This document shows, piece after piece, positions 44,901 through 53,193 of a DNA stretch of 64,000 bases. The number at the start of each line of letters is the position of its first letter. The first letter of the stretch is position 1. The notes under the pieces were generated by a model. That model saw only the letters and a program-made list of their open reading frames with translations. It made no database searches and had not been told where the DNA came from. The stretch is from the sequence record MN453779.2; one strand, 5' to 3'. Made by a program: the position numbers and the translations under genes.

Positions 44901-46802
44901 ATGCAAGTTAACAACAACGAAAACAACGCTATGAACACTACCCTGGGTCTGGGTACTTCTTCTAACGGTTCTGGTTCTCCTCTGGCTGCGCTGTTTGGTA
45001 GCACCAACCTGATCACCTCCTCCCACTCCGCAACCGAAGTTGCTGATGTGATCAAGTACCTGCAAGAGAAAGTTAAAGAGCTGCTGGCCAACACCGCCCC
45101 TGAAATCCAGAAAGCAACTCTGCCGCGTTTCATAGAACGGCCGACCTCTGACATCACCCCGCATCTGCCCGCCATCGCAATGTACACCGTACTGGGTACT
45201 AGCTGCTACGTTATGCCGATCCTGTTCTACAAAGCGGGTTTCACCGATGCCACCGATACCATCCAAATGGGTAACGAAGCTCCGCGTGGTTATGCTAAAA
45301 CTCCGACTTCCTTCATGACCAATGATGTAATGAAGAAGGTTAAGGAAAGCTTCAAATTGATCGACGGTAAAACCATGACCAACGTAGTGATTACCGCACC
45401 GATGGTAATGAACCTGGAGCGTTATATCAAAGCTGGTATTACCGGCGAAGATATGGCCGCTAAAGTTGGTCACAAACTGCTCAAAGAGTGGCAGACCGGT
45501 ATTACCAACATGGCTGCTCTGGAAACTCAGAAAGCTGGTGGTCAACTGCCCAACCCGTTTGCCGGTGGTAAACTGTTTGGTCAGCATGAAGCTGCTCTGG
45601 CTCGTGTTGAGTCTGTTCATCAACTGGTTGTTGATGGTCTGCCTGTTCCGTATAACCTGGCTGTTAAGCTGGCAACTGCCAACAAGAACAACATGACCAA
45701 CTACGGTAACAACACCGCCAAGACCATCCTGACAACTTACCTGAACGTCCAACTGGAAACCATGTCTCCTGGTCAGTTCAACGATGTTCGTGCTCGTAAC
45801 CCCGGTCGTCCTTGCGGTCCGATCGTTCCGGTTGTTGTAGCTGGCATGTCCAACCCTGGTGAAACCCTGCATCACAACAACTCCCTGATGACCCAACTGC
45901 TCGGTCTGTTCGCAAGTCTGGCAGCTAACGCACCGGTGTTCTTCTCCGAAGCGTTCCGTGGTCAACAGGTTGGTAACCGTGGTAACCTGGGCGTGTTCAA
46001 CAACTACATGGCTTCTATTCTGGGTCCTGTGTACGGTGCTGATCACAACCTCACCAACAAGAACATCACCAACATCGCAGTAACCAATGACTGGATCCAG
46101 CGTTATGTTGCTCCCCAAGCAGTATACGCAATCGATCTGATCGGTTATGTAGATGAAACCAGTAACAACGACTTCTGGTTCGGTATCACTTCTGGTGACA
46201 AGTCCTCTACCTACGTTCGTTCCATGATCTCCCTGTGTGATCTGCTGACCGGCGGTAAGTTCTCTGCTCTGGCTAAAGAGAACACTGAGAAAGGTGCAAA
46301 CCGTGACAAGTCCAAAGAGTGGGCGTTTGGTGATGCTATCATGCATCGTACCAACATCATCCGTCCTTACGGTATCGCCAAGAAAGGTAATGCTTGGTTT
46401 GATCTGGGTGAAGTCGATGGTATGTTCCTGCGTCAGCCCGAGTACTACGGTACCAATGAAGTAGCAATTAATGAGTACAACGCCCTGCTGCAAGGTAGCA
46501 TGGGTAACATTGATACTCGTATCCGTCAGTACAACATCCTGAACCGTCTGCAGGCGATGTTCAACAACGATGTGATCGTTGAAGGTTGGAGCCTGCGTTA
46601 TGTATTTAACCAATCCTTCTTCAACACCCTGGCTCAAGCAATGTCTGCTGCTGGTACTCTGTCCGTATCCGGTAACAACGCTGCCGCTAACTGGACCATG
46701 CACGTTCAGAACGAAATCCTGAACATGACCATGGGTGCTAGCCTGTCTAACGCTCCGGTCACTCAGAACGTAATGAACAACGTGATGTACACCCAGTTCT
46801 AA
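44901..46802 (+). CDS. chmA: Chimallin (phage nuclear shell protein)
   Basis: 633 aa, extreme high-expression codon bias, early promoter at 44806. Lies immediately upstream of the nvRNAP beta-prime gene, as phiKZ gp54 does. Assigned by size and synteny. Confidence 0.82.
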   Translation: MQVNNNENNAMNTTLGLGTSSNGSGSPLAALFGSTNLITSSHSATEVADVIKYLQEKVKELLANTAPEIQKATLPRFIERPTSDITPHLPAIAMYTVLGTSCYVMPILFYKAGFTDATDTIQMGNEAPRGYAKTPTSFMTNDVMKKVKESFKLIDGKTMTNVVITAPMVMNLERYIKAGITGEDMAAKVGHKLLKEWQTGITNMAALETQKAGGQLPNPFAGGKLFGQHEAALARVESVHQLVVDGLPVPYNLAVKLATANKNNMTNYGNNTAKTILTTYLNVQLETMSPGQFNDVRARNPGRPCGPIVPVVVAGMSNPGETLHHNNSLMTQLLGLFASLAANAPVFFSEAFRGQQVGNRGNLGVFNNYMASILGPVYGADHNLTNKNITNIAVTNDWIQRYVAPQAVYAIDLIGYVDETSNNDFWFGITSGDKSSTYVRSMISLCDLLTGGKFSALAKENTEKGANRDKSKEWAFGDAIMHRTNIIRPYGIAKKGNAWFDLGEVDGMFLRQPEYYGTNEVAINEYNALLQGSMGNIDTRIRQYNILNRLQAMFNNDVIVEGWSLRYVFNQSFFNTLAQAMSAAGTLSVSGNNAAANWTMHVQNEILNMTMGASLSNAPVTQNVMNNVMYTQF

Positions 46803-46888: not shown

Positions 46889-49800
46889 ATGTCAACTTTA
46901 GCGAATGTACTTGAGCAGTATCAAATACAACATCTTCTTCCAACCACTCTATTTGATAAAATTATTGAAGAGTCAGGTTATACACCAGAAGGTGATGACG
47001 AAAGCTTTTACCAGCCTCTTTATCCAGACATTGAAGATTTTAATTATCGGCATGATACTACTACAGTTCATCCGATCTATCTGAATGATTTCGATTTTAA
47101 TATAGAAGAAGATCGAGAAAAGATTACTGCTCTACTACGTACCGAATATGAAGGAAACAATTTCGATACAGTCGCGAGCTGCACTTGTAAGAAACATCGG
47201 ACTAATGCGTACCTTGGTACAAGTTTCGTTTGTGACAGTTGTGGAGATCCTGTCACTAAACCACTTGGCGAGAAAATCGAAACCAAAGTCTGGCTTCGCA
47301 CTCCTGCTAATGTGTCAGGTTTTATTAATCCTACTATTGCGGAAGTGTTCTTTCGTAAACTTAACACCAAAACTCCTAAGGTAAATTTGATGGAGTATTG
47401 GATTAACAAAGAGTTTAGAAATGAAAAGCGTTTTAGAGACCCAAGTCATAGTGCGTTTAAAATAGCTTGTAAACTAGAAGCTTTCCGTTTGTCGCTCAAT
47501 ATCGAATTTGGATATAACGAGTTCGTTGACAATATGGATTTGATTATCAGATCAGCTATTGAACACGACACTAATGGTGTTCTGGATCTTACTGAAAAGA
47601 ACCGTGAACATTATGCGATGTTCTGGGAAAAATTCAAATCAAGAGCTGTAGCTCAACATCTCCCTTTGCCTAACAAGGTAACCTCTATTGTCGAGTCTGA
47701 CCAACGAGATAAATATGTTAATAAGGAGAAGAGTGATCTTGAAAAGATCTTTTACACCATTGCTGATATGTATCCAGCTTATGACTATCGTTCTACTGAG
47801 AACGCAGAGATCATGGGGAAGATCTTTACTAAACTCAAAAACATGATGTTGGATGTAACTGAATCTATCCTCTTCAAGAAGAAAGGGATGATTCGATATC
47901 ACGCTGGTGCTGGTAAGCTACCAATGACTGGTCGTTCTATTATCACAGGTGAATCTGGTGTTTGTCGCTCAGACACTATCATCGTTCCCTGGTTGTACGG
48001 AATAACTTGTTTGGATAAACACCTAACTAACTGGCTGTATCGGAAAGGTTATACCCCGCTGAAAGTAAAGGAGATTATACGTTCTGCTGCTAACTTTAAA
48101 CATCCTGTTGTAGAGGAGTTCTTTAACTGGGTAGAAAGTAATCGATACGCCATTGCAACGTGCGGTCGAAATCCTTCTATTCAGTATTTGTCAGCACGTG
48201 GTTTCTTTGTACAGTTTAACCGCGATGTAGAAGATAAATCCATCCGGATTCCGATCACTACAGTTAAGGAATTTAATGCCGATCGAAATGTATTTAGCAT
48301 ACATGTGGGAAAATAACTTAAACTATTTTCTCCAGTTAAATACACTCAGTCCCCCTAGGGTGAAAGTCCTAGTGAGGTACCTTTTGAATTGCTGGAAAGT
48401 CCACAAAAGTTACTTACCTAAGCTTAATTAGAAATGATTAAGTTAGTGGTGTCGAAAGACAGAAACAACAAGTAACCTGTCCTACGCTAAGAAATAATGC
48501 TAAGGGATACTAACAAGGGATAATCAGCCTCCGAGGATCTAAGTATATTCGTGATGAATAGATAGGATTCAGGTTCAACGACTGTCCCGTGGCTGGGAGT
48601 AGGGAAATCAGATTTCCTGAAGTATTAGGCACCTAACCGTGTAAAGACGTAGGTGATGGTATAGTCTGCTCCTCTAGTAATGTAGAGGCGGGTGTCTTAG
48701 CGCACCGGTGTTATTATGATAGCCAAAATGGCGAACGGTAATAACACGGACATAAGGTTCGACGGTAAACTTTTGCTGTCATTAAACCCTTTCAATTGCT
48801 GGAAACCCCTTAGAGCTTAATCAACTAAAGCGGAATTGGAAACAATAAACGTAAATGTTTGAAAATGATTAAGATTGGGCAATCAGCAGCGAAGCTTCTA
48901 AATACATTTGAGATGAATGGATACGAAGAACGTTCAACGACTACGTTCCCAGAAGCCTGGGATGATGAGGGCGCTTTAAAGCGAAGATATAGTCTCTACC
49001 GGTATGAAAGTATCGGATGGAAATCCCTGACCGGAATTCCACGTGATCTAGCGAATCACGAAGAGTCCTAAAAAGACGGAGAACAATAATGTTGTTAATA
49101 CCTGAATCCGATGGGTTCTTTGTTACTGAAACTGGTCGAGTATACGACAAAGACGGCAAAGAACGAAATTACTACACCAACGGAGACGGGTATATTACCG
49201 CCTCGATCTCTATTGGTGGTAAGTGGCAAACATTTGGGGTACAGCGGTTGGTCATGTTAGCCTATGAACCGATTGATAATCCAGATGACTACACGGTCAA
49301 TCATATTGACCTTGATAAAACCAATAACAACAAACCAAATTTAGAATGGCTGACAACAAAGTGGAACAATATCCATTCTGCTATTTTTAACAGTAAAGGT
49401 AAACGCCCTGTTGTCAGATGTTTGAATGGTGATGAAGAAATGTTCATCAAAGATGTGATGACGCTTCCCACAATTCTTGGTGTCGATATCCAGCAAATAT
49501 GGTTTGCAATTAAGAACTCAACCCAGATAAATGGATGGTCCATTTCACCGATCCCTTATGACGATAAAGAAATTATCCGATTATTGAACAGTTCCATTGG
49601 AACTGTTGATGGACCAGTGAGACCAGTTAGATGTTTAGACATCGAAACTGGAATTTGGAAAAATTACAAGAGTATGAAAGAAATGGCTAATGAATTTGGT
49701 GTTGGTATAACACACATCAGACATCGCTTAGCTACCTTTGAACGTCCTCGTATATTTCTCCAACGTTACATTATTCTGGATGATGGAGTTTCAGATGAGT

Positions 49801-50104
49801 TCATCACCCCAGAACTAATCGCCATGTTAAAGATGACTTGGACGAAGAAAAGAAAGCGTTGGTCAGAACGCTGTAATTAGGACTCGATAAAAACCACTTA
49901 TGTGGAACAATGTGATAGGATAACATGTATCTATTCTTTATCCCCGATATGGTGGGTAAAGTAAATGCGTATAGTAACTGGGGGCACCATCAAATGGTCG
50001 ATCCAAACAAGCCGTTTAAAACAAGTAGATTTGTTGCAGCGACACGAACTAATCTCTTAAACATAAATAGCGTACTTCTTAATACACCGATTGAGGAGGA
50101 CTAA
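46889..50104 (+). CDS. Non-virion RNA polymerase beta-prime N-terminal subunit, spliced: join(46889..48283, 48758..48766, 49919..50104), 529 aa
   Basis: Zn-binding Cys pairs, GRSIITG and CGRNPS motifs. Joining the three exons restores KEFNAD-FDG-DNMY (catalytic NADFDGD). Confidence 0.9.
48284..48757 (+). mobile_element. Group I intron 1 (474 nt, no ORF)
   Basis: Follows U and ends in G. Core motifs: P GAATTGCTGGAAA (48386), Q TAATCAGCC (48521), R GTTCAACGACT (48573), S GATGGTATAGTCT (48655). Confidence 0.88.
48767..49918 (+). mobile_element. Group I intron 2 (1152 nt) carrying an HNH ORF
   Basis: P1 pairs exon GACGGU with guide GCUGUC, including the U-G splice-site pair. Core motifs: P CAATTGCTGGAAA (48793), Q AATCAGCAG (48881), R CGTTCAACGACTA (48931), S GAAGATATAGTCT (48983). 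Ends in G. Confidence 0.92.
49089..49880 (+). CDS. Intron-encoded HNH homing endonuclease
   Basis: VQRLVMLAY...VNHIDLDKTNN...NLEWLT..WN..H motif and C-terminal RPVRCLD...YKS..E.A repeat. GGAG RBS. Lies 3' of the S motif. Confidence 0.88.
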   Translation: MLLIPESDGFFVTETGRVYDKDGKERNYYTNGDGYITASISIGGKWQTFGVQRLVMLAYEPIDNPDDYTVNHIDLDKTNNNKPNLEWLTTKWNNIHSAIFNSKGKRPVVRCLNGDEEMFIKDVMTLPTILGVDIQQIWFAIKNSTQINGWSISPIPYDDKEIIRLLNSSIGTVDGPVRPVRCLDIETGIWKNYKSMKEMANEFGVGITHIRHRLATFERPRIFLQRYIILDDGVSDEFITPELIAMLKMTWTKKRKRWSERCN

Positions 50105-50105
50105 T

Positions 50106-50756
50106 TTGAACGTAACATCAGCTTTCAATAGAGGTTGTGGTGGAAGCTTGAGTAGTGAAGCTGCCCAAGTCTACGATAGCTTCATGGGAAATATGTTGCA
50201 GAAATACGAAAACTTAACTGGATGGTTGAGCGAAACTGTAGATTCTGTAAAGAAAGCTCATAGCAACTTCATGTCTTCTAAAATGTGGGAGTTCTCTAAC
50301 CGTATTGGTAGAACAGGACACTACGTAGGAAGATTCGAAATCGGTTATCTGTCAGAAGTTCATTTCCAACAACAAGCCACTGGGTTTATGCGTAATTACA
50401 TTATGGCTAATCCTAACATGATGGCGTTGTATGAAACTGAACAAGTTTCTGGATATGGTGGAGATTTCTCTGACTTGTGTTCTGGTATTGGTCATGGTAA
50501 CTATTACTATGATAAAGCGATGGACGGATTAGTTACTCAAAATGAGAGTGATCAATACTTCTATCGTACTTACCACAATTCAATGGACGAAGGAACGCAT
50601 CTAAGTCCTAGAGAACGTTTCGATATTCAACGTACTTGGCGTGCGACCGACCACCACATTAAGAACTTGTTTGACTCGTCTAACATTGCGGGTGGAAACA
50701 TTCTTACTTTGGAAGAAGTTGAAGAACGTCGTAAAGCAGAAGAAGACAAAGAGTAA
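50106..50756 (+). CDS. Conserved core hypothetical protein
   Basis: TTG start behind GAGGAGG, about 216 aa, follows the nvRNAP gene. Confidence 0.7.
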   Translation: MNVTSAFNRGCGGSLSSEAAQVYDSFMGNMLQKYENLTGWLSETVDSVKKAHSNFMSSKMWEFSNRIGRTGHYVGRFEIGYLSEVHFQQQATGFMRNYIMANPNMMALYETEQVSGYGGDFSDLCSGIGHGNYYYDKAMDGLVTQNESDQYFYRTYHNSMDEGTHLSPRERFDIQRTWRATDHHIKNLFDSSNIAGGNILTLEEVEERRKAEEDKE

Positions 50757-50831
50757 TTAAACTGAACTACCTGAGGAGTTATCCTTGGGTAGTTCTTCTA
50801 TCTACTTTAAAAAAATTAAGGAAATAGACAA

Positions 50832-51158
50832 ATGAAGCAAGTTCACGAAGATGATATTTGTGTTGTAACACGATCTGAAGTTGATGTTAATCGTTACTAT
50901 GGAAGTGGACGTCGTAGTAAACTACCTCTGCCAATGCTTAGGTATCAGGACTCAAGTGATCCCAATAAAGAAAATGGTTTCACTTTGGAAGGTGTAATCG
51001 CTTCTGCTATTGATCGTTTGGAGCACTTTAATACTGGACAGTTTAAATGTGATCACAATGATCGTGCTTTGGAACATCTTCGTGGCGCATTGAAAGAACT
51101 CAATGACCGAGTAGAAGATCGTAAAGCGCGAGATGTTTACAACACCGACAAAGCTTAG
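50832..51158 (+). CDS. Tad1-like immune-signal sponge protein
   Basis: YQ...NG.T.E.VI...IDRLEHF....FKC..N..A...L..AL..L..R..DR..R.V pattern recalled from the Tad1 family. Confidence 0.6.
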   Translation: MKQVHEDDICVVTRSEVDVNRYYGSGRRSKLPLPMLRYQDSSDPNKENGFTLEGVIASAIDRLEHFNTGQFKCDHNDRALEHLRGALKELNDRVEDRKARDVYNTDKA

Positions 51159-51166
51159 GAGTTAAC

Positions 51167-51655
51167 ATGGGTGCTGGATACGCCTCTTTCCAGATGGATT
51201 TGAAAAGTGCTGTAGCGATTAATGCAGCAATTGAAAAAGAAGAGATTAAATGCGCTGATGACTTTCACGAGAAGTTAGCAACTAAGATTAATATTGTAGC
51301 TAATGATCTTCACGCAACACTAATGTATGACAAGCGAGATCCCGACATTAGTCCAGGGATTAATCGTAAATCATACAAAGCTAAGGTAATCAACGTAGAG
51401 AAGCTAGGAGTACCCGGTAAGCAATTCTACGCCCTAGTCCTTACCCTTGAGTCAGAAGAGATCCAGAAACGTTTTAAAGAGCTTCTGGAGCTTGGGTTTG
51501 AGCATTCCTTCCCAGAGCTTAAACTCCATTGTAGTTTGTACTATGGAGATGGGACTGAACTGTGTTATAAGTTCATGAAGCGTTTATTTGATGAAGGTAA
51601 ACTTCCAGAATACATTACACTTTGTAATGAGAACTGGAATGCTTGTAAAGACTAA
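51167..51655 (+). CDS. acb1: Acb1-like 2H phosphodiesterase (anti-CBASS)
   Basis: Two HxT/S motifs (LHATLMY, LHCSLYY) and LVLTLESE...R...L..GFEHSF, matching the T4 57B/Acb1 layout. Confidence 0.75.
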   Translation: MGAGYASFQMDLKSAVAINAAIEKEEIKCADDFHEKLATKINIVANDLHATLMYDKRDPDISPGINRKSYKAKVINVEKLGVPGKQFYALVLTLESEEIQKRFKELLELGFEHSFPELKLHCSLYYGDGTELCYKFMKRLFDEGKLPEYITLCNENWNACKD

Positions 51656-51751
51656 CCTTTAAGATCCATGAAATTTCAAACCTATATTACTAGAGTGATA
51701 AATATAAATAATGTTTCATCATCTCTCCATATATAGATAAGGAATATAACC

Positions 51752-51895
51752 ATGACTTCAGCTCAACTCCTCGGTCTTGCTTTCTTTGGTCCTATGATGG
51801 TAGTTACCTTTTCTGTCTTGGGGTTCTACTACTATAACCAGTGGAAAGAAAATAAAGCTAAGAAAGGTCCTATGGCTACCTTTAATAAGCGTTAA
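51752..51895 (+). CDS. 47-aa single-pass membrane protein (not in the ORF track)
   Basis: MTSAQLLGLAFFGPMMVVTFSVLGFYYYNQWKENKAKKGPMATFNKR. Early promoter at 51683, AAGGA RBS, downstream hairpin at 51905-51932. Confidence 0.7.
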   Translation: MTSAQLLGLAFFGPMMVVTFSVLGFYYYNQWKENKAKKGPMATFNKR

Positions 51896-51977
51896 GTTAT
51901 ACGTTGCTACTCTCCCAATTGGGAGAGTAGCAATATTAAGAATGATAATTTTTTTGTTTAAATTTAAGGAGTAATGT

Positions 51978-52391
51978 ATGCCAAAGGGTGTAGTTGCTAC
52001 CATGGATACTTTAGGTTTTGTTAAAGAACCTACTGTAAAGATTGACCGACTCATTGCTTACTGGTTTGCAAACCGTATTGATCAATCTATTATCCTCACT
52101 GGTATTTATAGTTATCAATATGTTGTTGCAAGACATCAGAACGATTTCCAAATTGATAATTTTATTAAAGATATGGAAGAAAGTTTACGTTCCTATCTTT
52201 TAGAGTGCTTCACAGGTGTCGAAGTAGTGGTAAGATCACCAGATTACGAACCAGTTAAAAAGATGTTTACATTAGCAGTATCTGGACAAGTAGAAGAAGA
52301 CGGTAAGCTGTATGATTTAGCAACGTCAGTTTCTGTTAATGGTAAGACATTCGAATTAATTCAAAGAGGAAGGAAAGAATATGCAAGGTAA
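51978..52391 (+). CDS. Conserved core hypothetical protein
   Basis: 137 aa, AAGGAG RBS. Confidence 0.7.
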   Translation: MPKGVVATMDTLGFVKEPTVKIDRLIAYWFANRIDQSIILTGIYSYQYVVARHQNDFQIDNFIKDMEESLRSYLLECFTGVEVVVRSPDYEPVKKMFTLAVSGQVEEDGKLYDLATSVSVNGKTFELIQRGRKEYAR

Positions 52392-53193
52392 AGAGGTTGC
52401 AGGTTTTGAAGGGGTTGATAAATTCGCTCACGGTGATTTGTTCGAATTCCTAAGTAAGTCCTTTGCTTATACAGAAGTGGCTGGACAACGTGTTATTCAG
52501 ACCCCGGATGGTTTATTTGTAGAACACGTGTTGATGGAAGAAGAGTACTTCGTAGATAACTGGCTGACCCAATTCGCTATTGGACACGCCGGTGATAAGA
52601 ACTACTTCGATATGGAGACTTGGAACCAACTTACCGATAACTTTACCAAAGGTGTAATTGTTATCAATGAGCAACGTCATCCAGTTCTGATCATTCGCAA
52701 GTTCACCGAAATGGTGCTTCCTGAAGACCTAATGGAGAAACTAGCCTTTTGCAGTAACTATGCTTCTAAAGCTAAGTTCGTTACCGACGAAGCCGAAAAG
52801 ACCGCTCTGATCAAACAGTTTGCTGAACAAGTCAATGCCATCACTAACTATGCTGGAGTAGACGAAGATTCTCTAACTAGTTTGATTCCTCCCGCTTTCT
52901 ACGATAAACACAATGTACATCCACTCACAATGAAACAATTGATCTACATTCGTGATACCTATAAAGTAGCGGGTCAATCTATCGATCCTGATGGCGATAT
53001 CTTTAAACGTCTTGAAACCATTATTACTAGGTTTAATAAAGGTGAAAAGATCAACGAGTCAGATAAGAAGTTTGTACTGGAAATTACCCAAAATGAATTT
53101 CTTTTTGACTACGAAGACCATTCGGTAGAAGAACCAATTTCAATCGAAAAAACGCCGTCAGAACCTGAAGAATTTGATCCGCTTGCGGATTAA
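52381..53193 (+). CDS. Conserved hypothetical protein
   Basis: 270 aa with an acidic C-terminus, overlapping the upstream stop. Confidence 0.7.
   Translation: MQGKEVAGFEGVDKFAHGDLFEFLSKSFAYTEVAGQRVIQTPDGLFVEHVLMEEEYFVDNWLTQFAIGHAGDKNYFDMETWNQLTDNFTKGVIVINEQRHPVLIIRKFTEMVLPEDLMEKLAFCSNYASKAKFVTDEAEKTALIKQFAEQVNAITNYAGVDEDSLTSLIPPAFYDKHNVHPLTMKQLIYIRDTYKVAGQSIDPDGDIFKRLETIITRFNKGEKINESDKKFVLEITQNEFLFDYEDHSVEEPISIEKTPSEPEEFDPLAD

Follow-up and report, generated by a model that had tools for sequence, protein, structure and literature searches.

A Tad1-family and an Acb1-family gene lie side by side in the nucleus-forming Aeromonas phage PS2 and probably form a module against nucleotide second messengers

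The subject of this study is a pair of neighbouring genes, gp53 (PS2_0053) and gp54 (PS2_0054), of Aeromonas phage PS2 (MN453779.2), a member of the genus Ferozepurvirus within Chimalliviridae, the family of nucleus-forming jumbo phages. The pair was analysed within a 64,000-nucleotide (nt) stretch of the PS2 record, referred to below as the window; over 49900-52400 the two agree at 100% identity and with the same coordinates. An original prediction, made from the DNA letters, had placed here two open reading frames (ORFs) 8 nt apart, interpreted their products as a Tad1-like sponge and an Acb1-like 2H phosphodiesterase, and joined them into a counter-signalling cassette. Both ORFs were found at the predicted positions and with the predicted lengths; in GenBank both products are labelled 'hypothetical protein'. 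The locus comprises the following features:

50764-50795, plus strand: terminator-like hairpin (14 pairs, then a T-rich tail) between gp52 and gp53, found by a scan
50818-50822, plus strand: Shine-Dalgarno-like AAGGA, 9 nt before the gp53 start codon, read from the sequence
50832-51158, plus strand: gp53, Tad1-family sponge-like protein of 108 amino acids (aa), ATG start
51157-51161, plus strand: AGGAG, ribosome-binding site of gp54, 5 nt before its ATG, read from the sequence
51167-51655, plus strand: gp54, Acb1-family 2H phosphodiesterase of 162 aa, ATG start

The pair is situated approximately 4 kb downstream of the nuclear-shell (chimallin) gene, with the RNA polymerase beta' gene on one side and an SbcD-like gene on the other, and its upstream neighbour gp52 belongs to phrog_3254. 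The AGGAG sequence overlaps the gp53 stop codon (TAG, 51156-51158) at a short distance from the gp54 start, which makes translational coupling plausible, and gp54 is probably coupled to gp53 in this way. In each of the nine relatives aligned, a G+C-rich hairpin and then a run of T stand before the Tad1-like gene, and the stem sequences are unrelated to one another. The pair would therefore constitute a unit of its own, apart from the polymerase genes, and the hairpin suggests that the two genes are co-transcribed behind a terminator. The motif TATATTAC, the core of the phiKZ early promoter, was not enriched in the window (7 copies found, 3.9 expected) and had no copy upstream of gp53, and a sigma-70 scan gave background level only. 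A record-wide search revealed only one Tad1-like gene in PS2.

When compared as a single sequence with the solved Tad1 chains, gp53 matched over the helical hairpin only (residues 46-106; E 4.4e-5), whereas a profile built from 12 chimallivirus homologues matched the Tad1 entries with E-values of 2.4e-12 to 4.2e-12 and reached back to the last beta-strand. The same profile matched phiKZ gp184, also a Tad1 protein, over the hairpin (E 1e-8). The criterion of Hadary et al. tells Tad1 from Acb2 by an HHpred match to 7UAW (Tad1) versus 7UQ2/8H39 (Acb2); in line with it, the profile search here returned no Acb2 entries at E up to 10. Among 1.84 billion cluster representatives, 1472 clusters proved to be related to gp53, and 73 sequences from related clusters were used to build an AlphaFold2 model (predicted local distance difference test, pLDDT, 95.2; predicted TM-score, pTM, 0.82). 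The model consists of a four-stranded N-terminal sheet (residues 2-38; strands 2-6, 10-14, 21-26 and 32-38) and two long C-terminal helices (52-66 and 74-99). The top 20 Foldseek matches in the PDB were all CbTad1 or CmTad1, aligned over the full length with prob 1.00 and a query-based TM-score (TMq) of 0.72-0.83, and the first match outside Tad1 had an E-value of 0.19. The domain PF24729 (Acb2_Tad1_hairpin) is precomputed on gp53 homologues of 75-94% identity and is also carried by the nearest Atlas clusters; a direct Pfam scan gave no PF24729 match to gp53, nor to typical family members, and is therefore uninformative, as is a genome search with PF24729 that produced no candidates anywhere, the 14 control genomes included. 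No gp53-related loci were found in IMG/VR, and an NCBIfam search yielded nothing useful. The predicted membership of gp53 in the Tad1 family is well supported by profile and model alike. The candidate identity of gp53 as Acb2 was ruled out, since there was no Acb2 match by profile or by fold.

The ligand pocket was mapped by sequence alignment only; in the helical part, where the alignments are ungapped, CbTad1 numbering equals the gp53 residue number plus 16. The CbTad1 residues that surround the adenine and the diphosphate, i.e. R78, F82, F87, N92, R109 and R113 (bioRxiv 10.1101/2022.05.03.490397; 10.1101/2023.11.15.567273), correspond to R62, F66, F71, N76, R93 and R97 of gp53. All except F66, which is variable, are invariant among the 12 chimallivirus homologues. 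Both residues of the CbTad1 cyclic-trinucleotide site are replaced in gp53 (R90 by D74 and T97 by E81), and gp53 is therefore probably not a cyclic-trinucleotide binder, unlike CbTad1 and CmTad1. R90 and T97 are likewise missing from phiKZ gp184, where the substitutions are similar (E and N). CbTad1 G55, a backbone contact of the ribose linkage, aligns with S41. The proposal that the N-terminus of gp53 is divergent was borne out for the residues that contact the linkage of 3'cADPR (gcADPR), since H29, R57 and N122 of CbTad1 are not kept, and failed for the fold, since the N-terminal sheet is retained. We read gp53 as a putative working sponge for an adenine-containing signal. As a separate observation, residues 36-46 (window 50937-50969) form the only long variable run among homologues of 75-94% identity; it coincides with the beta4-alpha1 loop, which in Tad1 is among those that line the pocket, and the helices are almost invariant.

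Evidence for the identity of gp54 is of the same kind. The protein matched the Pfam model PF23474 (Acb1) with 52.5 bits (gathering score 27; E 5.9e-14), and no other 2H family in Pfam, the LigT and 2_5_RNA_ligase2 models included, matched it at E up to 0.1. PF23474 was present on all 53 gp54 homologues found, and those of phages D3 and N1M2 bear the UniRef name 'Anti-CBASS protein Acb1' (CBASS, the antiphage signalling system based on cyclic oligonucleotides). A profile of 42 homologues retrieved Acb1 entries only from the PDB (7T26, E 8e-11; 9Q2G, E 1e-10). The structural model (pLDDT 92.7) was closest to PDE-9 of Burkholderia phage BCSR5 (9q2y/9q2g) and Acb1 of phage FBB1 (7t26/7t27), with E-values of 1.5e-6 to 1.1e-5 and TMq of 0.59-0.69, whereas other 2H folds (plant CPDase, which came next, Usb1, LigT and CNPase) gave E 1e-3 or worse. 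PDE-9 and T4 Acb1 represent the structural group with the broadest activity on the signals of cGAS/DncV-like nucleotidyltransferases, CD-NTases (bioRxiv 10.1101/2025.08.21.671373), and the group of PDE-9 and FBB1 Acb1 degrades 3'3'-cyclic GMP-AMP (cGAMP) and other CD-NTase signals (bioRxiv 10.1101/2025.08.21.671373; PMC9117128).

Both catalytic motifs of gp54 are intact: H49-A-T51 (His codon 51311-51313) and H121-C-S123 (His codon 51527-51529). H49, T51 and H121 are invariant across the 42 homologues, and Ser in place of Thr, as in the second motif, is usual among 2H enzymes. In the profile alignment Y5 corresponds to the stacking residue Y12 of Acb1, and F115 lies six residues before H121, the same spacing as that of F107 before H113 in Acb1. 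E155 and W157, conserved near the C-terminus, are candidate counterparts of E141, the adenine contact of Acb1, and of W147, which with Y12, W74 and F107 makes up its base-stacking aromatics. The model contains an additional helix (31-40), of lower confidence, which might cover the active site; its lowest pLDDT values are at the C-terminal end (mean 63 for residues 161-162). Membership of gp54 in the Acb1 family is well supported by these sequence and model comparisons, in agreement with the prediction of an Acb1-like 2H phosphodiesterase. A different candidate role, that of a virion protein, is indicated on several homologue records ('structural protein') and is unsupported; the gene product is absent from the RisingSun proteomics text searched (PMC6034870).

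Selection was estimated from five Ferozepurvirus genomes. The rate of nonsynonymous substitution (dN) was 0.070 for gp53 and 0.010 for gp54, and the ratio of nonsynonymous to synonymous rates (omega) was 0.17 and 0.04, respectively, with 0.03 for the genes flanking the pair. At the protein level gp53 thus evolves about seven times faster than gp54. These codon comparisons indicate that both genes are under purifying selection and functional.

The association of the two genes extends far beyond PS2. In all relatives, the order is RNA polymerase beta', a phrog_3254 gene, the slot occupied by the pair, a small membrane ORF, a virion protein gene and, farther away, SbcD. The content of the slot is as follows:

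Tad1-like and Acb1-like genes adjacent (14 of the chimallivirus genomes examined): PS2, PS1, ACP1, AVP1, pAEv1810, CF8, AerS_266, AhC3_1, LAh10, OBP, N1M2, SXP01, Yubaba, Sureiya
One fused gene, 238-245 aa: Erwinia phage AH04, Kosakonia phage Kc263, four metagenomic proteins
Nuclease gene alone: pEt-SU

In the GenBank record of Aeromonas phage AerS_266 the orthologues of gp53 and gp54 already bear the names 'Anti-Thoeris, immune evasion protein' and 'Anti-CBASS, nuclease', and one of the metagenomic fusions resides, in the same slot, on a contig that also encodes chimallin. By hhalign, the fused proteins have an N-terminal domain homologous to gp53 (probability 98.4%, E 4.2e-15). Missing from this domain are the alpha1-alpha2 loop (F71), the conserved Asn (at the N76 position) and the arginine-rich terminus of helix 2; despite this loss of pocket residues it is conserved among the six fused proteins. 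Inside the fusion, the sequence Met-Ser-Asn-x-Gly-Tyr with which the free nuclease begins can still be recognised. In a tree of nuclease domains the two-gene state occurred in both main clades and the fused forms were confined to the OBP/pEt-SU side, where they lie in an unresolved part, and the fusion looks like a derived state. No Tad1-like gene adjoins the Acb1-like genes of RisingSun, Aphrodite1 and Cronobacter phage GAP32, which are more distant. Because the same two genes are adjacent in 14 genomes and fused in six further proteins, their pairing is not due to chance. The cassette proposed in the original prediction is strengthened by this conserved adjacency, by the separate transcription unit and by the natural gene fusions.

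Several side observations concern the variation of this slot. In PS1 (L017, 1131-2334) a 1.2-kb insertion with ORFs of 40 and 347 aa separates the gp52 homologue from the Tad1-like gene; it is not present in PS2, ACP1, AVP1 or pAEv1810 and could be a further mobile element. Conserved N-terminal extensions of 35-75 aa precede the Tad1 core in the Tad1-like proteins of N1M2 (L004, 2899-2997) and Yubaba (L011, 1369-1494) and in several metagenomic homologues; in phiKZ gp184, with which they may be compared, the extension is the capsid anchor. A 47-aa hydrophobic ORF (window 51752-51895) follows the Acb1-like gene. It has a counterpart in the two-gene, fused and nuclease-only relatives whose downstream region was read, even where the Tad1-like gene is missing, and none is annotated in SXP01. 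A copy of TATATTAC is located upstream of this ORF, at 51683-51690; as stated above, the motif is not enriched in the window.

Taken together, it is likely, on the strength of sequence, models and analogy, that gp53 and gp54 constitute a two-gene module removing the nucleotide second messengers of abortive-infection immunity. While family membership and gene linkage are supported directly, we infer the mechanism by which a sponge and a phosphodiesterase would act here, including the oligomeric state, the ligands and substrates, the timing of expression and the effect on Thoeris, CBASS and CRISPR immunity. The nuclear shell of PS2 would be unable to block such messengers. The two genes would be transcribed together behind the terminator, with translation of gp54 probably coupled to that of gp53. 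By analogy with CbTad1, gp53 would form at least dimers with pockets at the interface, in which the adenine would be stacked between F66 and R93 and read by N76, with the phosphates held by R93 and R97. It would in this way sequester adenine-containing signals, i.e. the Thoeris signal 3'cADPR (gcADPR) and/or CBASS cyclic dinucleotides. The partner gp54 would act as a metal-independent 2H phosphodiesterase, using the H49-x-T51/H121-x-S123 tetrad to open 3'-5' bonds in cyclic dinucleotides and trinucleotides, for example 3'3'-cGAMP and cyclic tri-AMP (cAAA), and its activity would cover CBASS and might reach the type III CRISPR signal cA3.

A number of observations weigh against this interpretation. 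On the side of gp53, the contacts made by CbTad1 with the ribose-ribose linkage of gcADPR are not conserved (in the alignment N20/R21 stand opposite H29 and D106 opposite N122, and R57 is lost in a deletion of two residues), so that binding of gcADPR is not assured; K88/E89 take the place of the hydrophobic hexamer contact M104/W105; and one quarter of the sponge homologues tested elsewhere inhibited none of seven systems (bioRxiv 10.1101/2025.08.24.671296). On the side of gp54, no aromatic residue aligns with W74 of Acb1, and only four residues follow the last strand (149-158), where Acb1 has a flexible lid of eight residues (145-152) that shuts over the ligand. The fixed position of the gene in the core block and its very low omega are less typical of accessory anti-defence genes, and for some groups of viral 2H phosphodiesterases no cleavage of any known messenger is seen (bioRxiv 10.1101/2025.08.21.671373).

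The first of these points leads to the best placed of the alternatives, namely that gp53, as a sponge of the Tad1 fold, takes up some ligand different from gcADPR (only a cyclic dinucleotide, or an undescribed signal), leaving Thoeris uncovered. Besides the lost linkage contacts, it is favoured by the seven-fold higher dN of gp53, by the pocket-lining loop of residues 36-46, which evolves fastest among close relatives, and by the readiness with which sponge families change specificity (bioRxiv 10.1101/2025.08.24.671296). The adenine-stacking and phosphate-binding residues are nevertheless kept; all 10 of the first-tested Tad1 homologues, from diverse phages, inhibited Thoeris (bioRxiv 10.1101/2022.05.03.490397); and phiKZ Tad1, whose trinucleotide site is similarly substituted, reportedly blocks Thoeris as well as CBASS (PMC13282480). 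We consider this alternative possible, if somewhat doubtful.

More unlikely still is a coupled sponge-nuclease device, in which capture and destruction are linked or the Tad1 fold serves as scaffold or regulator, or else a gp53 that, given its changed linkage contacts and quickly evolving pocket loop, binds an undescribed signal. If the coupled device is real, the AH04-like and Kc263-like fused proteins would be its end state. We are sceptical of the stricter version, according to which gp53 and gp54 form one physical machine whose Tad1-like part is mainly an oligomerisation or regulatory scaffold for the nuclease. The degenerate and yet conserved Tad1-like domain of the six fusions (without the F71 loop, the N76 position and the arginine-rich helix end) speaks for it, as does the tight, possibly translational, coupling of gp53 and gp54, whereas in PS2 and the two-gene phages the pocket residues are invariant apart from F66, which fits a working sponge. 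The predicted complex of two gp53 and two gp54 chains received a score of 0.00, i.e. no answer, and is evidence neither way.

Similarly improbable, in our judgement, is a housekeeping role of gp54 as a 2',3'-cyclic phosphodiesterase or an enzyme of RNA-end healing or ligation, whose Tad1-like neighbour would be uninformative with regard to CBASS. Homologues in relatives are indeed annotated as RNA ligase or RNA 2',3'-cyclic phosphodiesterase, the gene keeps to one position within a conserved block and is very strongly constrained by purifying selection, pEt-SU has the nuclease gene without a Tad1-like neighbour, and the viral 2H groups inactive on known immune messengers, cited above, set a precedent. 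What argues against such a role is the specificity of the matches: Acb1 was the only Pfam model to match, the profile found Acb1 entries alone in the PDB, and the E-values for folds of the Acb1 group were better than those for LigT, CPDase and Usb1 by some three orders of magnitude. Furthermore, a domain of a sponge family is encoded next to the nuclease or fused with it, and the GAP32 homologue resides amid genes of NAD-salvage type. Finally, it is very unlikely that the adjacency of gp53 and gp54 is an accident of synteny without functional connection: both genes do belong to a long co-linear, vertically inherited block, in which conserved order alone is weak evidence, but an independent gene fusion exists, a terminator separates the pair from the upstream genes in all relatives aligned, and the molecules on which the two families act are of one class. 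The two-gene module directed against second messengers is the preferred reading.

Two observations on Acb1-like genes of other phages may be added. In GAP32 (L016, 1-4889) such a gene is found amid genes for nicotinamide phosphoribosyltransferase, Sir2 and a Nudix hydrolase, a NAD-related neighbourhood suggestive of counter-defence. ESM Atlas clusters contain fusions of the Acb1 domain with a phage portal protein (PF06381 + PF23474), and the existence of these fusions suggests that other phages deliver the nuclease by way of the capsid.

The window also contains further features of note. The product of gp47 (window 44901-46802) is the nuclear shell protein, chimallin (phrog_4795, E 7e-95); phmmer gave no direct match between it and the solved chimallins. 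The RNA polymerase beta' gene is interrupted (window 48317-49924): gp48 (46889-48316) encodes its main part, and a 59-aa ORF (49925-50104) corresponds to the last 58 residues of the OBP beta' subunit (74% identity). Between these two parts there is a group I intron match (RF00028, 48702-49016; 79.6 bits, gathering score 50), a second, weaker intron match (48332-48687; 42 bits) and an ORF for an HNH endonuclease (49089-49880). The interruption looks like a mobile intron in an essential gene. As regards environmental occurrence, the sequencing runs that contained 53-67% of the sampled 31-letter words of window 50700-51800 were wastewater metagenomes and metatranscriptomes; they represent close relatives rather than identical copies and, being kept as contigs, are uninformative on expression. 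Since these runs come from several studies, PS2-like phages are common in sewage.

Nucleus-forming jumbo phages are shielded from DNA-targeting defences, and their remaining weak point is immunity acting via RNA or small-molecule signals. According to a 2026 review, phiKZ Tad1 is so far the sole anti-defence protein described in jumbo phages (PMC13282480). Here a free-standing Tad1 homologue is coupled to an Acb1-family enzyme across a large branch of Chimalliviridae, with hosts in Aeromonas, Pseudomonas, Klebsiella, Serratia, Shewanella, Erwinia and Kosakonia. A full-text search, of incomplete coverage, found no paper on a conserved Tad1-Acb1 pairing in Chimalliviridae or on a Tad1-Acb1 fusion. 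The Tad1 and Acb1 families are both already known and no new kind of mechanism is revealed; the new points are modest: the coupling is conserved, natural fusions exist in which the sponge domain is degenerate, and the trinucleotide site is absent from a sponge that is paired with an enzyme from a trinucleotide-cleaving family. The two-gene, fused and nuclease-only states are natural variants for studying the division of work between sponge and nuclease, and the locus may be relevant to the choice of Aeromonas phages for aquaculture.

Compared with known systems, gp53 has the same fold as the solved Tad1 proteins over its full length (CbTad1 and CmTad1, PDB 7UAV, 7UAW, 8SMD and 8KBB-8KBH; SBSphiJ7 Tad1; TMq about 0.8), and its family has in common with them the PF24729 hairpin domain and the residues for adenine and phosphates. 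It is shorter (108 aa, compared with 123-142 aa), shows about 20% identity, and keeps neither the trinucleotide site nor the hexamer contact nor the gcADPR linkage contacts of CbTad1. Its relative in the same virus family, phiKZ gp184 (PDB 8Y6V chain I), is linked to it by the profile match and by the like substitutions at the trinucleotide site, but is a 230-aa protein with a capsid-wedged N-terminal domain. Experimentally characterised, gp184 is a minor protein of the capsid; the head protease cuts its C-terminal part free, and this part is injected (PMC11297242; bioRxiv 10.1101/2025.11.23.690004). Since gp53 has no such domain, it is presumably made after infection. As to the second gene of the pair, AntiDefenseFinder found no Acb1 in phiKZ (PMC11724313). 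The Acb2 proteins (T4 Vs.4, PaMx33 Acb2) share the PF24729 hairpin with the gp53 family, but match gp53 neither by profile nor by fold, gp53 having the Tad1-type beta-sheet.

With the Acb1 enzymes (T4; Erwinia phage FBB1, 7T26/7T27; BCSR5 PDE-9, 9Q2G/9Q2Y), gp54 shares the compact 2H fold, the Pfam Acb1 match, the two catalytic His motifs, the N-terminal Tyr (Y5 for Y12) and the aromatic residue before the second His (F115 for F107). It differs from the solved enzymes in sequence (17-18% identity), in the second motif (HxS instead of HxT), in the extra helix 31-40 and in the four residues that follow the last strand where Acb1 has a C-terminal lid; nor does it possess the N-terminal lid of PDE-9. 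For the combination of the two proteins, the closest parallels are the Tad2-Acb4 and Sequestin fusions (bioRxiv 10.1101/2025.07.12.664507) and the anti-defence islands (PMC11724313), where two signal-removing modules likewise occur together or in one polypeptide. The published fusions join two sponges, whereas those of the AH04/Kc263 type join a sponge-family domain, which in contrast to the published cases looks degenerate, to an enzyme.

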